Shown: positions 19,237 to 26,209, counted from the first letter of the stretch. The stretch is 64,000 bases of DNA from Phaeosaccion multiseriatum (GCA_965112735.1 OZ218957.1:2976001-3040000); one strand, 5' to 3'. Notes: generated by a model from the letters alone, not told the origin. Numbers and translations are program-made.

Positions 19237-21023
19237 TTAACTGAACAGTTCCCTCTTGTGGAAGTGGTACCCCCGCCACCGCACCTGCGCGTACTCCGCA
19301 AAGGAGAAGTCAATTTCGCTTGTCCGGGCCTGAATCTGAGCCCACAGCGCCCAAGTCAGGTGACTGGTGAGCGTGTACTCCTTCACTGCCTTGCTGATCG
19401 CCGACACAACCAGAGCCTGTGCCTCCTCAGTGGCAGCCGCACTGGCAGTTGGTGATACAACAGCAGTAGTGGCAGCAGCAACAGCAACTGGTACTGCAGC
19501 AGCAGCAACAGCATTAGCAGTTGGTGATACAGCAGCAGCAACCGCACCTGAGGTTTCCGCGCCTTGGCCTTGGTTTGGAAGTTGGTGATACGGTAGCAGC
19601 GCCTGGGTCATGCGGCTTAGGTCTCCGGAGGCGGCGGAGTAGCACTGGACCAGGTGGGCGGTTTGGTCGTGGCTGGGGAAATCTCTCTCAAAGTTGCCCT
19701 CGAAGCCAGCGCACTCACACAAATGGTTTGCCAAGTCGTAGCCGCGAGGGTTGTAGTTGCTGGGAGGAAAAGAGAAAGTGGAGAGAGAGACAGAGAGGGC
19801 GATTCATCAACGTGGGTACGTGTGTGTGTGTGCGTGGGTGCGTGTTCGGAGGTACTTCATGTCAGCGTATCAATCATATCATGGAGGCAACACTCTCAGC
19901 ATCTCATCATCTCTCTCCCTCCCTCCCTCCCTCTCTCTCTCTCTCTCCCTCCCTCCCTCCCTTCCACCCTCCCTCTCACCTGTACTCGTAGTCAATGAGG
20001 CGAAGCGTTTGGATGACGGGCGGCTTGCTGCCCTTCTTCTGCTGCTGCTTCTTGTCCCCAGGCGGGCCCACCAGCACATTTCCACTCAGAAGGTCGTTGT
20101 GAGCAAAGACAATGCCATCTGAGAATTGGATGGCGAGGGCTCGTGCCACTTTCTCCGATGTCGTCGGCACCTCGCTCCTTGCGCCACTCCCACCACTACC
20201 GCCACCCGTTCGAGACTGAGCAAGTTTGAGCGCACTCTTTGCCTCTCTCGCTCTGTCCTCCAGGGCTTTCTTGAGCCACTTCACCTCTCGTTCCACTTCA
20301 CTCAGCGGCAAGTCGAAGGCACTGCTGCTGCTACCCTTGCTGTTCGGAGGAGGGTGCGATTCCAAGTCTTTCAAGGTCCTGCGGGGAAGCACGGAGATAC
20401 AAAGAGTCAAGAGGTGTGGGGTGGGTGGGTGTGGGTGTGTGTGTGTGCGTGGGTGCGTGTGTGGGTGCGTGTGTGGGTGCGCGGGTGGGCAAGGACAAGG
20501 AAGCCTATCTCATACACCCATCCAGCGGAACCTCACTGGCACCTAACAAAGCCAACCACCAAGCCATCTAACCCATGTTGTGATTCACTTACGCGAGCCA
20601 TTTGTCAATGGTGGCCCACATGACTGGATGTGCTGCATCCCCCGCGGACTTGACGGTCTGCTTGTGCAGAATCGCCAACTGTGAGGCCACTGCCTTGGGG
20701 ACGTCGAAGGGCGAGCGTTGGAGCAGCTCCGGAACGGTCGCTGCTCGGGCGTCCAGCAACTCCTGTGGTCGGTCGATGATTGGTGCATTCCATCCATCCA
20801 TGCATGCAGCCATCCATTGCCATCCATTCAGCCATTCATTCCGGGGGGGGGGGGGGGTCGCCAATGAATGGGGGGGGGGGAGAGCCAAAGTCAGTGGGGG
20901 TGGTGGTAAGAGAAATGGGGAAGTAGTCAGTCCATTGACTCGCTTGTGATCATCTCATCGGTTGCTATATATATATACACATGTGTGAGTGGTGTGTGTG
21001 TGTGTGTCCCTCTCTCTCTCCCT

Positions 21024-21079
<56 letters not shown>

Positions 21080-22072
21080 CTCTCTCCCCTACCTACCCAC
21101 CTACCTCGATCCTGCCCTTGCCTCGCTCGAACTCGCCGTAAAACTTGGGGCCAAACCCCAACTTCGCCAGCTCCTGAAACACTGCATTCTCCCTCCGGCG
21201 GTCCAGGAGCAGGTCGGTGTCCTTGCCATAGACGCGGATGAGCAGGCCTCTGGTCTTGTCACCGTTGGGATAGGCTCGGAAGATGGTGTTGGTGATACCT
21301 TAGGATCACAGATTGAATTGTCGTGTGGGTCCCAACGGAAAATGTTGGTGGTAGTAGTAGGTGAAAGCACGAAGGGGGCGAGGAAGGGGTGCGCCGTAAG
21401 GGGAGAGTGTCTCAAGTCTGCAAGTGCTACAGTAAGGTATGCTAAGCCTCTCTAGGGTTGGGTGGGTGGGTTTGGGGTTGGGGGTGCTTGGGAGGCACAG
21501 ACGACTAAATCTCTTGTTCCCAAGAGATGCAATGGCCAGAATAGGAAGAGGAGAAGCGCATCCACCGTACCTCCTTTGATGGGCTTGATGGTGACTGCCT
21601 CATCGGGCACATTGCTCCAATCCTGCATCACCTCACGGATGTGCCCCAGCACCTCCGGATAGCTCTCAGAGGCTCCCTTCCCTGCATCTGCTTCAGCCCG
21701 CAGGGCTCTCGGGAGTGTAACTGCTGCCGACAATACCACCGCATTGGACAACACGGACTGCAAGAGCTCTCTCCTGCTAGTGCTATTGCTACTGCTACTG
21801 CAACTCAACGTCTTCGACTCAGCCGCCGCTGCTGCTGCCTCCTTGGCACAGATGAGGGCTTTGACGCCATCGTGATGGGAAGCGAGAGTATCTCCACCGA
21901 CTCGTCGAAAGTGGTGCCCTCTCTGCTCCTGCTGCTGAGTGTCTCCCCTTCCTCGCTCTCTGTTAAGACATGCACTCGAAAGGGATGAAGGTATGAAGGC
22001 TGTCGAGGAGCCAGAGAGCATTGCAATCGCATATCCCGCAGCCAAGCACTTTCTTCCAATCATTGGACCCAT
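19237..22072 (-). CDS. Choline/ethanolamine kinase with signal peptide, plastid transit and twin-arginine presequence
   Basis: Five exons. KPIKGGITNTIFR, LLIRVYG...DRRRE, GFGPKFYGEF, Brenner motif VFAHNDLLSGNVL and choline-kinase motif LIDYEYSNYNPRGYDLANHLCE. N-terminus: ...AIAMLSGSSTA-FIPSS, later SRRELLQSVLSNAVVLSAAVTLPRALRA. Confidence 0.9.
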
Positions 22073-22152
22073 TTTTCTCCCCCTCTCCTCCCTAAAGAGC
22101 CCCCCTGCCTCTGTGTATAAGGTAAATGAAGGCGAAGGAAGAAGAGAGAGAA

Positions 22153-22210
22153 AATTGTTCATTGACTTACTCTTTTCCCGCAATTGTTCATTGACTTACT
22201 CTTTTCCCGC
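22153..22210. promoter_or_regulatory. Perfect 29-bp tandem duplication inside the 199-bp divergent intergenic region
   Basis: AATTGTTCATTGACTTACTCTTTTCCCGC at 22153-22181 and 22182-22210, between ATGs at 22072 (-) and 22272 (+). The repeat is certain; a regulatory role is inferred. Confidence 0.5.
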
Positions 22211-22271
22211 TGAGTCGGTGATTCGGTGACGCCCATTCCTCGGAGGGATTAGACCCCACCGAAGATCAACC

Positions 22272-23201
22272 ATGCTGCTCTCGTGTCTTTGGACGACTCT
22301 GTGCATATGCCTGCTTGGCCTGGTGCTCCAGGAGGGGGAAGCTTTCAGCACCACCGGCGGGACCTCTCGTATCAGAACTGGCAAGACAACACGGTGTTGG
22401 AGTGAAAGCGGGAACGAGAGCTGCAACCACCACCACCACCACCACCAGCAGCAGCAGCAGCAGCAGGGGTTACTAGGAAGAAGGAAGGGTTCGCTCCAGC
22501 GCCGGAGATTCCTGCAAAACTTGTTGACCGCAGCTGCTGGGAGCGGCCTCGTTGTGGCTCCCTCAGCCGCCCTCGCGGCCAAAGGGGCGGCTGAGCTCGA
22601 CGCGGAGTACTATTTGAAGTCCCTGTTTAACAGTGAGTGCGTAGCAATGGGTAGCACCGGAACTTTGCACAGCTGTATTCTTGCGGCCGGTCGAGTGGGC
22701 CTCTTAATAGACTTCTCGTTCGCTCGCTCGCTCGCTCGATCTCTCCCCCCACCCCCTTCCGCTCCCTCTCTCCTCCTTCGGGGAAACACCAGACAACCTA
22801 CCTGATGTATCCAAGCGGCCCGACAAGCCCAAAGCAGCCCGTGCCTTGGACCTTGATCTGGCACAGCTCCTGCAAGACACCCTGCTCAAGCGTATCATCG
22901 AGTTTAGCTCTGTGGGCAGCAAAGACAGCGCAGAGGTAGTTGGTAAGGCCACCAAGGACAAGATTGAGAAACTTATTAAGGACCTCGGACCTTACTTCCA
23001 ACGGTAAGTGACTTTTAGCTCCTGTCTCTTGCCTCTCGCTCTCTCGCCTCTCTCCCTCCATGTCTCTCTAACCGCTCTCTCCCTTCGCCCATTACGCTCC
23101 CCAGGAAACAGCCCTTCCCGCTTGATGATCTCAGTAATCAATTCTGCTTTGACTTGCGCAGCTACGCCGCTTTCAAGGTGAGGGGAGATGCACAAATGGG
23201 A

Positions 23202-23250
<49 letters not shown>

Positions 23251-26209
23251 GGGGGGGGGGAAGGAGAGAGAAAGGAAGGGGAGAGAGGAGAGAGGGAGAC
23301 AAAGAGAAGAGAGGGGGAGAATGAGCATGAGAGAAGGAGGGAGAGAGAAGAGAGAGAGCGAGGCGGAAACGGCGGCAGGGTGTGGGGGAAAGGGGGGGGG
23401 GGGGCAAGCAGCAAGGCTTCTTCGCTCCACACTGAAACAGCACTGGAGAGAGAGCGGTTGTGTTCTTTCGCCGGAACCTGAGCCCAACCACCACACACAG
23501 CAACCGGTCACGAATGCCCACAACCAACCTCTGTCTCCCTCCCTCCCTCCCTCCCCCCCTCTTCTCCTCCCTCCTTCTCCCCCCCCCCCCCACACACACT
23601 CTCTCTCTCTGTGGACAGGTCGCTGCGGCGCAGCTCGTAGACTTGCAGCACCGAGCCTTGTTAGTAAAGGGACTGGGGGAGGATGTATATCAAGCCATGG
23701 ACGCCAGAATAGCTCGAGGTGTGAGATGGGGGGGGGGATTGGAGGAGAAGGAAGAGGAGGAAGAGAACAGGGAGGTGGTGATGGAGGAGGAGGAGGAGGC
23801 AGCCCTGATGGAGGAGGAGGAGGAGGAAGAGGACATCATCATCTTCGCTCTCCTTCTTCACCTGCTTCTGCTTCCCCATCTGTACCCAGTTGCACTTATT
23901 CTCTCTCTCCATCCCGCCTGCTGGCACACCTTCCTTCCCTCCTGAACCCTTCTCACCCCTTGGCTTCCCCTTCTTGCCTCTGTCGTTTGTGCTCGTTGCC
24001 TGCCCTGCTGTACCTGTCTTGCCTTGCTGGACCCTGTCCTGCTCTCTCTCTCTTCCGTGGGGCTCAATTGCGGCTCTTCTTTTCCGTTCGGCACTAAGTA
24101 GAAACGGGAAAGCGCGTGCCCATAAAGGACGCCAAAATTTCGTAAGTGGCCCGCAGAAGATGTAGCTCGCTCGCTCACCCACTCACTCACTCCTCACTTC
24201 ACTCACTCACTCACTCACTCACTCACTCACTCACTCACTCACTCACTCACTCACTCACTCACTCACTCACTCACTCACTCACTCACTCACTCACTCACTC
24301 ACTCACTCACTCACTCACTCACTCACTCACTCACTCACTCACTCACTCACTCACTCACTCACTCACTCACTCACTCACTCACTCACTCACTCACTCACTC
24401 ACTCACTCACTCACTCACTCACTCACTCACTCACTCACTCACTCACTCACTCACTCACTCACTCACTCACTCACTCACTCCCTCACTCACTCACTCCCTC
24501 ACTCACTCCCTCACTCCCTCACTCACTCACTCACTCACTCACTCACTCACTCAGTCACTCACCCACTCACTCACTCACCCACTCACTCACTCATTCACTC
24601 ACTCGCCCACTCACTCACTCACTCACTCATCACTCACTCACTCACTCACTCACTCACTCACTCACTCACTCACTCACTCACTCACTCACTCACTCAATCA
24701 ATCATTCCCTCCCTCCCTCCTTCCACGTGTGTTGTGCCTATCTCATTCAACGTGTATGTATGCGCGTGTGTGTGCGTGTGTGTATATGCAACAGCGACAC
24801 GAATGGCATTATTCCTGCCCGAGCAGGCCTTGTAACGCTGCTAGAAGAGTTCAAGAAGACCGGCCTAATCAGGTGGGGGTGGATGGCAGTGGATGGACAG
24901 GGAGGGAGGGGGTGAAGGGGAGGGGGAGCAACGAAAGAGGGAGGGAGGGAGGGAGGGAGGGAGGGGGTGAGGGAGCGGGTGAGGGAGGGGGTGAGGCAGG
25001 CAGATTGGAAGAGAAACGTGGGAGTGATTGATTACATTGAGATGGAGGGGTGGAGAGTGATTGTTGATTCACGTCTCCATCTTCTCTTCACGTCTGTAGA
25101 CCTTTTCTCGTGCCCTCTGTTCTCTTTCTTGTCTCTGCTCATATCCTAGTCTTGTTTGTCCTCTCTTCCTCTCCTTATACCCGCAATTGGCAGAGATTAC
25201 AAGATCTCATCCCGCTTCCAGGTGGATGACTGGACTTACGATCAGACCGCCTCTCTTGAGCTCAGTGTGTTCGAGCCAGCCACGCTCGCAGGCTTCGTGC
25301 AGATGAACGGGGAGGGCTTTAGGTGAGAGAGAGAGGAGTATTAATTGACTTAGGAATAACCTGAGAAACTGAAAGTGTGTGTGTGAGTAGAGAGGAGTGG
25401 GGCAGCGAGGAGTCATATGAGAGAAGTGAGTGGTGAGAAACACAGTTTCGACACTTCCAATGAGAAACTCTCTCTCGTCTTCCTCCCTCTCTCCCTGTGT
25501 CTTTCTATCTTCCTCTCTCTCTCTTGCACCAGTCCCCATTCACTATTCACTCATTCCCCCCCCCCCCCCCAAATCCACTGCCATCCATCCACTGCCATCC
25601 AGGTTCCACCCCGACTTCGTGGGTCCTGCTCTGCAAGCCTACTTGAAGGCGGTGAGTGACGAACGTCAAGTGTCGTTAAGTGACCTTTAGATACATCACA
25701 ACCTCGGAAACTAACCTAGGCAGCTCCATCTGCCCTGACCCTCAACTGATTCTTGTCCCCTCCCTCTCTCCTCCTCCCCAACCACCCCCTCCTTCTCCTC
25801 CTCTTTCTCCTCCTCTTTCTCCTCCTTCTCCTCCTCCTTCTCCTCCTCCTCCTCCTGCTGGTCCTCTCTCTTCCTCCTCCTCCTCCTCCTCCTCCTCCTC
25901 CTCTTCCTCCTCCTCCTCCCCCTCCTCCTCCTCCTCCTCCTCCTCCTCCTCCTCCTCCTCCTCCTCCTCCTCCTCCTCCTCCTCCTCCTCCTCCTCCTCC
26001 TCCTCCTCCTCCTCCTCCTCCTCCTCCTCCTCCTCCTCCTCCTCCTCCTCCTCCTCCTCCTCTTCGTTCCTCCCCCCACCGCCTCATGTGCACACCCACA
26101 GTGTAACGTCAAGTCCCGCTATGACGAGTACCTTGTCGATGAAACGTACCGCCCGGACCCCTCGCAGTTCGTGGCTTCAGAGGTCTTGTACGCATGGGAG
26201 CTTTCGTGA
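22272..26209 (+). CDS. Uncharacterised plastid protein with Tat (thylakoid lumen) signal
   Basis: Nine exons in consistent phase, ending ...YDEYLVDETYRPDPSQFVASEVLYAWELS-stop. Signal peptide ends GEA-FST, followed by QRRRFLQNLLTAAAGSGLVVAPSAALA-AKGAAELDAEYYL. Confidence 0.8.
24165..24700. repeat. (CACT)n microsatellite, intronic
   Basis: More than 500 bp of near-perfect CACT. Related tracts lie at ~26550-26730 and, as GAGT, at ~48470-48760. Confidence 0.95.
25780..26062. repeat. (CCT)n microsatellite, intronic
   Basis: Read directly. Confidence 0.95.

Follow-up and report, generated by a model that had tools for sequence, protein, structure and literature searches.

A putatively lumen-directed ethanolamine-kinase paralogue of brown algae and their close relatives, as seen in the genome of Phaeosaccion multiseriatum

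Background

Known ethanolamine and choline kinases are cytosolic enzymes of the Kennedy pathway. In ochrophytes, a signal peptide followed by a phenylalanine at position +1 is the signal that targets proteins to the plastid. Here we describe a five-exon gene for a kinase of this family in a 64,000-nucleotide stretch of the Phaeosaccion multiseriatum genome (GCA_965112735.1, OZ218957.1:2976001-3040000; this whole stretch is referred to as the window). The gene lies on the minus strand, and its kinase domain is preceded by an apparent three-part presequence with a signal of the twin-arginine translocation (Tat) type. Judging from the sequence, we give a probability of roughly 0.5 to the reading that the product is a Tat-type, soluble, lumen-directed ethanolamine-kinase paralogue of brown algae and close relatives.

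A review of the plant thylakoid lumen from 2013 stated that no lumenal kinases had been found and that lumenal processes which depend on nucleotides were contentious (PMC3813922). The function of TAAC, a proposed ATP carrier, is restricted to green plants, according to the title of the paper on it (PMC3355511). No literature that we found connects ethanolamine kinase to either the lumen or brown algae.

Results

An intact kinase domain

The coding sequence of 1788 nt encodes 595 amino acids and is interrupted by 4 introns of 272, 342, 214 and 220 nt, whose 5′ ends read GTACGG, GTAGGT, GTAAGT and GTGAGA, respectively, and whose 3′ ends are all AG (Table 1). Every exon and every boundary was reproduced by tblastn with three orthologous proteins against the window. 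Searches were run exon by exon, with the orthologue P0001 from Chrysoparadoxa australica as the full-length proxy. The Pfam family Choline_kinase (PF01633, cut-off 29 bits) was detected in exon 2 (5e-12, 46 bits), in exon 5 (4e-15, 56.5 bits) and in exon 4 (7e-6), which at 26 bits is by itself below the cut-off; a profile scan of the alga's own genome agreed with this result. P0001 matched human choline kinase alpha (2CKO) with an E-value of 1.7e-33, and its homology to that structure starts at residue 62, directly behind its hydrophobic segment.

The catalytic motifs are intact, with G-G-ITN over the junction of exons 1 and 2, LIRVYG, HNDLLSGNVL, IDYEY-S-NYNPRGYDLANHLCE over the junction of exons 4 and 5, and HLTWALWAQIQ. 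Both H-x-D-x4-N (HNDLLSGNVL) and I-D-[FY]-E-Y…N…D-[IL]-x-N-H (IDYEY-S-NYNPRGYDLANH at the exon 4/5 junction) are kept in all orthologues. The loop CAGFEGNF, behind N-H-x-C-E, is of the ethanolamine-kinase type and not of the longer choline-kinase-alpha type, as typed on an alignment with human choline kinase alpha and on canonical ethanolamine kinases. An intact choline/ethanolamine kinase domain, as had been claimed in the original prediction from the DNA of the window, was thus confirmed, with PF01633 on three exons and the motifs complete, and the product is best read as a catalytically competent, predicted kinase of the ethanolamine/choline type.

Exon 4 carries two low-complexity loops that are peculiar to P. 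multiseriatum. Exon 5 has an insert of ~45 amino acids, rich in Ala, Val and Thr and encoded by GCN repeats (about 19431-19563), which is present in no orthologue. In the DNA contigs this insert shows many short skips and a very high word depth, as expected of a repeat common to other loci or of a length-polymorphic stretch. Small introns hidden behind the insertions of exons 4 and 5 were considered and rejected, as the insertions keep the reading frame and their length falls far below the 214-342 nt of the gene's introns. These introns are full of long GA and CA repeats (e.g. 21000-21100 and 19900-19980).

A presequence in three parts

The presequence comprises 128 amino acids, all of which are encoded in exon 1 and are contiguous with the kinase N-lobe. 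Its signal-peptide-like part ends in STA|F-I-P, a junction that by eye resembles those of five plastid precursors of the same genome, namely HCF136, PsbP-domain 1, PsbO, Psb27 and PRK, with a signal-peptide core weaker than that of these calibrators. The 73-amino-acid spacer that follows contains 13 Ser, about 12 Ala and 6 Arg, has a net charge of about +2, and is comparable in length and composition to the spacer of HCF136 from this genome. In the third part, SRRELL (residues 99-104) fits the pattern Z-R-R-x-hydrophobic-hydrophobic and is followed by 19 uncharged core residues with a mean Kyte-Doolittle hydropathy of 1.55, up to P121, and then by the basic c-region R-A-L-R-A-E-A|D129. A signal-peptide-like part, a spacer and a twin-arginine (RR) segment with its core, which had been proposed from the outset, are all present, in the right order and in the same exon as the kinase. 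The proposed combination of RR, hydrophobic region and A-x-A was also recovered, with the end point shifted: the ALRA first suggested has Leu at -3, and the canonical site is A126-E127-A128, two residues further on.

For a strict Tat-like pattern we required RR-x-hydrophobic-hydrophobic, at least 13 uncharged core residues whose hydropathy is positive, and small-x-small close by. The six-frame reading of the window, 81,198 residues in all, contained this pattern 10 times; 3 of these hits belong to the kinase and the neighbouring gene (the latter counted twice) and 7 to chance. When residues 26-140 were shuffled, 72 of the 20,000 shuffles contained it. The chance of finding it in a stretch of such length is about 0.4-1%, leaving aside its placement between a plastid-type signal and a mature domain.

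Lumen precursors and Tat genes of the same genome

Genes of lumen families were found by Pfam profiles in the 67 Mb genome (22 contigs, with the window at C8:2976001-3040000), and their N-termini were then read. HCF136 shows the junction …VDA|FAP and the third part SRRGFMQ…, with an Ala-rich core and AEA|A; Psb27 shows …AVA|FQP and SRRAAIS…, with AFA|DE in exon 2; PsbP-domain 3 shows …SFG|FLS and SRRRFVSE…, with AFA|E; and PsbP-domain 1 shows …TEG|FAP and TRQHFFQ…, with SFA|DD. PsbO combines the junction …ATA|FQP with a KK-type (Sec-like) third part ending in …AQA|I. The stromal control, PRK, has the junction …AQA|FVAP and no third part, as about 35 residues lead to the mature P-loop domain. 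The core hydropathy of the kinase falls within the calibrator range of 0.72-1.73. The label of the kinase would thus be of the same make as those of the Tat-type lumen precursors of this alga, and unlike that of the stromal enzyme.

The gene for PsbP-domain 1 is a single exon on contig C10 (positions 1489-2292 of the extracted locus, minus strand; Pfam PsbP, 62 bits), and its TRQHFF hints that this lineage may tolerate a signal with only one Arg. No homologues of it came from word-based searches aimed at RR/RQ interchange among its orthologues. The PsbQ and TPM-phosphatase families had no match in the profile search of the genome. Pattern scans of 30 Mito_carr loci of about 3 kb each located no carrier with a thylakoid address, loci of this length being too short for the result to weigh against such carriers.

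As for the translocase, an open reading frame (ORF) of 257 amino acids encoding a plastid-type TatC (183 bits) was detected on contig C19, apparently the plastid contig, and a TatA/Tha4-like gene (27 bits) with its own signal peptide, Phe and transit peptide was detected on C2. A second TatC-like match lies at C18:56869-57482, on a contig that is probably the mitochondrial genome. In a six-frame read its frame is interrupted by TGA, TAG and TAA codons at several places, and it could be a frameshifted alignment, a gene in another genetic code or a decayed gene.

Orthologues and distribution

No identical protein was found in a full-library HMMER search with exon 5, in which the best representative had 63% identity over that exon. 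The nearest relatives are P0001 and proteins of the brown algae Ectocarpus, Scytosiphon, Pylaiella, Undaria, Laminaria and Hapterophycus, to which exons 2 and 3 show 58-70% identity, compared to less than 50% to canonical kinases. Only ten of 226 retrieved proteins were assigned to this clade by reciprocal comparison. A maximum-likelihood tree was built from 50 sequences, of which the joined sequence of the window gene was not one; in it the clade was supported at 100/100 and stood on a long stem among protist ethanolamine-kinase-like proteins, with plants, animals and oomycetes outside that group. As the genome holds a second, canonical ethanolamine-kinase gene on C1 (962000-971999, minus strand), which is multi-exon and has an N-terminus without a presequence, the gene in the window is an extra, divergent paralogue. 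This paralogue appears to be confined to brown algae and close relatives, as far as the databases reach. The catalytic-loop exon of the C1 gene is broken by an in-frame stretch of approximately 48 amino acids, probably an intron read through.

In the N-terminal alignment R100 is invariant (9/9 sequences), as is L104, and R101 is unique to P. multiseriatum. At the RR site, TRQGFL is found in Ectocarpus and Pylaiella, TRQEFL in Scytosiphon and Hapterophycus, TREHFL in Undaria and SRGKLL in Chrysoparadoxa; the RQEFLQ of Scytosiphon was aligned by tblastn directly on the RRELLQ of the window gene. A Gly/Ala-rich hydrophobic core and, behind it, A-[E/D]-[A/V] are kept in all orthologues. In the Ectocarpus sp. 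4 model these are preceded by a complete signal peptide, …LVRG|YTA, and a spacer rich in Arg, and the Pylaiella counterpart of this signal peptide, …VVRG|FVA, lies in an open frame upstream of the annotated Met. When the orthologues were checked for the RR, none of the 8 had kept it, RQ, RE or RG standing in its place, which in part goes against the original prediction. What they do share is the first Arg, the F/L-L and the core, together with a signal peptide with Tyr or Phe at +1 in two brown algae; the second Arg is absent from all of them. The predicted three-part architecture is thus conserved and the twin arginine is not, the RR being specific to P. multiseriatum.

In the Pylaiella littoralis contig (9930-10030), the annotated start is inside the apparent signal-peptide core, and the frame upstream of it is homologous to the Ectocarpus signal peptide and runs to a stop without offering an ATG, which suggests that the 5′ end is mis-modelled or that an upstream exon is missing.

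Weighing the location of the kinase

Several observations weigh against a soluble kinase brought to the lumen by the Tat route. Even in plants, a lumenal supply of nucleotides is a contentious matter (PMC3813922). Since the second Arg is found in 0/8 orthologues, Tat dependence is not a conserved trait of the family, and the segment may instead serve as a membrane anchor or as a signal of the Sec or spontaneous type. The core of the signal peptide is a short one and lags behind the calibrators in hydropathy, with about 1.95 (hand calculation) versus 2.2-2.9 in their best 10-residue windows. The presequence has no coding bias in GC at the third codon position (0.55); as flat codon-position GC is also seen in the presequences of HCF136 and the PsbP-domain proteins, this is weak evidence either way. 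Finally, the 4 public runs that contain the locus are all DNA from one sample, with no RNA run among them, so that the support for transcription, the 5′ end and splicing comes entirely from homology. The contigs of these runs read through the introns, and over the span 21113-22416, which includes exon 1, they show zero differences.

On the other side stands the topology of the segment. According to the positive-inside rule, an RR before the core keeps the N-terminal side stromal. As the positive charges precede the core in this protein, the C-terminal kinase domain would be on the lumen side whether the signal is cleaved or not. Soluble and anchored forms taken together, we consider a kinase domain in the lumen somewhat more probable than not.

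The alternative that survives best, still an unlikely one, is a plastid kinase outside the lumen, for which the hydrophobic segment would be a stop-transfer signal, an envelope anchor or an inert linker and the kinase would reside in the stroma, the intermembrane space or the envelope. ATP is easily reached at a stromal or envelope site, and both the unconserved RR (RQ, RE and RG in the orthologues) and the near absence of a spacer between the signal peptide and the second hydrophobic segment in Chrysoparadoxa would fit such a location. However, the stromal PRK is without such a segment, whereas every lumen-family gene examined has one, RQ is also present in a PsbP-domain gene of this genome, and the charges before the core favour a lumenal C-terminus.

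A different use of the 5′ end seems distinctly less probable. The protein could start downstream, at Met149 or at a non-AUG codon, and be cytosolic, or the signal peptide could work alone and lead to the endoplasmic reticulum (ER) or the secretory system. The runs being all DNA, the flat codon-position GC of the presequence and the weak signal-peptide core would be compatible with this, and several brown-algal gene models begin right at the TRQ segment. On the other hand, the in-frame Met codons of exon 1 are codons 1, 4, 18 and 149 only, with an in-frame stop upstream of the ATG, and Met149, which comes behind the invariant R146 and E147, is part of a conserved helix of the N-lobe. As this is the next Met after codon 18, any full-length product carries the RR segment. 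From the RR on, the frame also stays open and shows homology to the orthologues, and a cytosolic ethanolamine kinase already exists in the genome. Extra 5′ exons do not fit either, since the start codon of the divergent neighbouring gene, 199 bp upstream, leaves no room for them.

Marginally weaker still is a thylakoid-membrane anchor. RR and core would then stay uncleaved as a signal anchor, like that of the Rieske protein, which is inserted by Tat, and would tether the kinase on the lumenal face. The 19 uncharged residues at a hydropathy of 1.55 come near a short transmembrane helix, and in the brown-algal orthologues the Gly/Ala-rich core is longer and the AxA harder to make out, but the Pro at -7, the basic c-region and the clean AEA|D are like the cleaved signals of HCF136, Psb27 and PsbP-domain 3.

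Features of the locus and the neighbouring gene

Table 1. Features of the kinase gene and its surroundings, in positions of the window
Feature	Position	Strand	Content	Basis
Whole kinase gene	22072-19237	-	5 exons; ATG 22072-22070, TAA 19239-19237	
Exon 1 (502 nt)	21571-22072	-	Entire presequence and start of the kinase N-lobe (…IKPIKG-G), in a single unbroken frame	
Signal-peptide-like part, residues 1-25	21998-22072	-	Predicted cleavage STA|FIP (Phe +1, Pro +3)	
Transit-peptide-like spacer, residues 26-98	21779-21997	-		
Putative Tat-type thylakoid-transfer signal, residues 99-128	21689-21778	-		Motif; positional homology with TRQxFL of the orthologues
Twin-arginine codons	21770-21775	-	AGG AGA (R100 R101)	
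Exon 2	21105-21298	-	G-ITNTIF (GGxTN loop), LIRVYG, DRRRE	Pfam, tblastn
Exon 3	20593-20762	-	ELLDARA… block, clade-diagnostic (identity 68-70% to orthologues, <40% to canonical kinases)	
Exon 4	19980-20378	-	Brenner phosphotransferase motif HNDLLSGNVL (20072-20101), IDYEY (19982-19996)	
Exon 5	19237-19759	-	NYNPRGYDLANHLCE…, HLTWALWAQIQ (W-x-x-W, amine pocket), Ala-rich insert, stop TAA	
Intergenic spacer (199 bp)	22073-22271		Between divergent start codons	
Neighbouring gene	22272-25323	+	First exon 22272-22634	

The neighbouring gene also has a three-part label, which consists of …GEA|FST, a His/Gln-rich spacer, QRRRFLQNLL with a core, and ALA|AKG. Two predicted lumen precursors would thus stand head to head, 199 bp apart. 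Neither a Pfam family for this neighbour nor a meaningful Atlas look-alike for its later exons was found, and the head-to-head pairing was not seen in Chrysoparadoxa or Pylaiella. The spacer between the two genes contains a perfect 29-bp tandem duplication at 22153-22210 (AATTGTTCATTGACTTACTCTTTTCCCGC, two copies), which occurs nowhere else in the window and may be a shared promoter or an element of the 5′ untranslated region. Within an intron of the neighbour, at about 24170-24700, a (CACT)n/(CTCA)n microsatellite extends over roughly 500 bp.

Discussion

What the sequence analysis shows is the gene structure, the kinase family with its motifs, how the presequence is built and matches those of lumen genes in the same genome, which Tat genes are present and how the paralogue is distributed. 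The route that we propose for a soluble lumenal kinase follows established targeting rules; what we infer is each step of the transport, where cleavage takes place, the substrate and the lumenal ATP. The signal peptide would bring about ER import and be removed at STA|F, and the Phe at +1 together with the transit-peptide-like spacer would then bring the protein to the stroma of the four-membrane ochrophyte plastid. There, the exposed SRRELL, the weakly hydrophobic core and the basic c-region would engage the plastid Tat translocase with the protein folded, and cleavage after AEA would leave a mature kinase of about 467 amino acids in the lumen, where the enzyme would use ATP to phosphorylate ethanolamine or an amino alcohol like it.

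A wider claim, that the brown-algal lineage keeps a dedicated and active ethanolamine-type kinase in the lumen, with ATP and phospho-amine metabolism there, is tentative and we would not bet on it at even odds. Perhaps, and this is speculation, such an enzyme deals with amino alcohols which, as weak bases, become protonated in the acidic lumen and so are trapped there. It would be pure conjecture to go on, as the original prediction did, to an unknown substrate or pathway in the lumen.

If the lumenal location is true, an ATP-using enzyme sits where plant studies found no kinase, and a conserved, intact kinase with a lumen address would offer a concrete and testable handle on the question of lumenal nucleotides in red-derived plastids. 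It would also mark a branch of the Kennedy-pathway enzymes that is specific to this lineage. Should the enzyme be stromal or envelope-bound, it would still be an unrecognised plastid ethanolamine/choline kinase of brown algae and their relatives.

Compared to known kinases, the product of the window gene belongs to the same Pfam family as ethanolamine kinase (EC 2.7.1.82; plant EMB1187-type and human ETNK) and choline kinase alpha (2CKO), with the same catalytic motifs and W-x-x-W pocket. It resembles the ethanolamine kinases in its NH-x-CE-x-AGF loop and shows 31-40% identity to plant, oomycete and protist enzymes, but it differs from known kinases in its 128-amino-acid three-part presequence, its long-stemmed clade and its three species-specific low-complexity loops. 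With the Tat-dependent lumen precursors HCF136, Psb27 and PsbP it has in common the Ser/Ala-rich spacer, S-R-R-x-hydrophobic, the weakly hydrophobic core and A-x-A, and its signal-peptide-like part appears to share their [A/G]|F-x-P end. However, the passenger is an ATP-dependent small-molecule kinase and not a photosystem assembly or extrinsic factor, and the RR of the kinase is not conserved among its orthologues. With NDK3 and the TAAC carrier, which have been proposed to handle nucleotides in the plant lumen and whose folds are unrelated to that of the kinase, it would share the need for adenine nucleotides in the lumen (PMC3813922).

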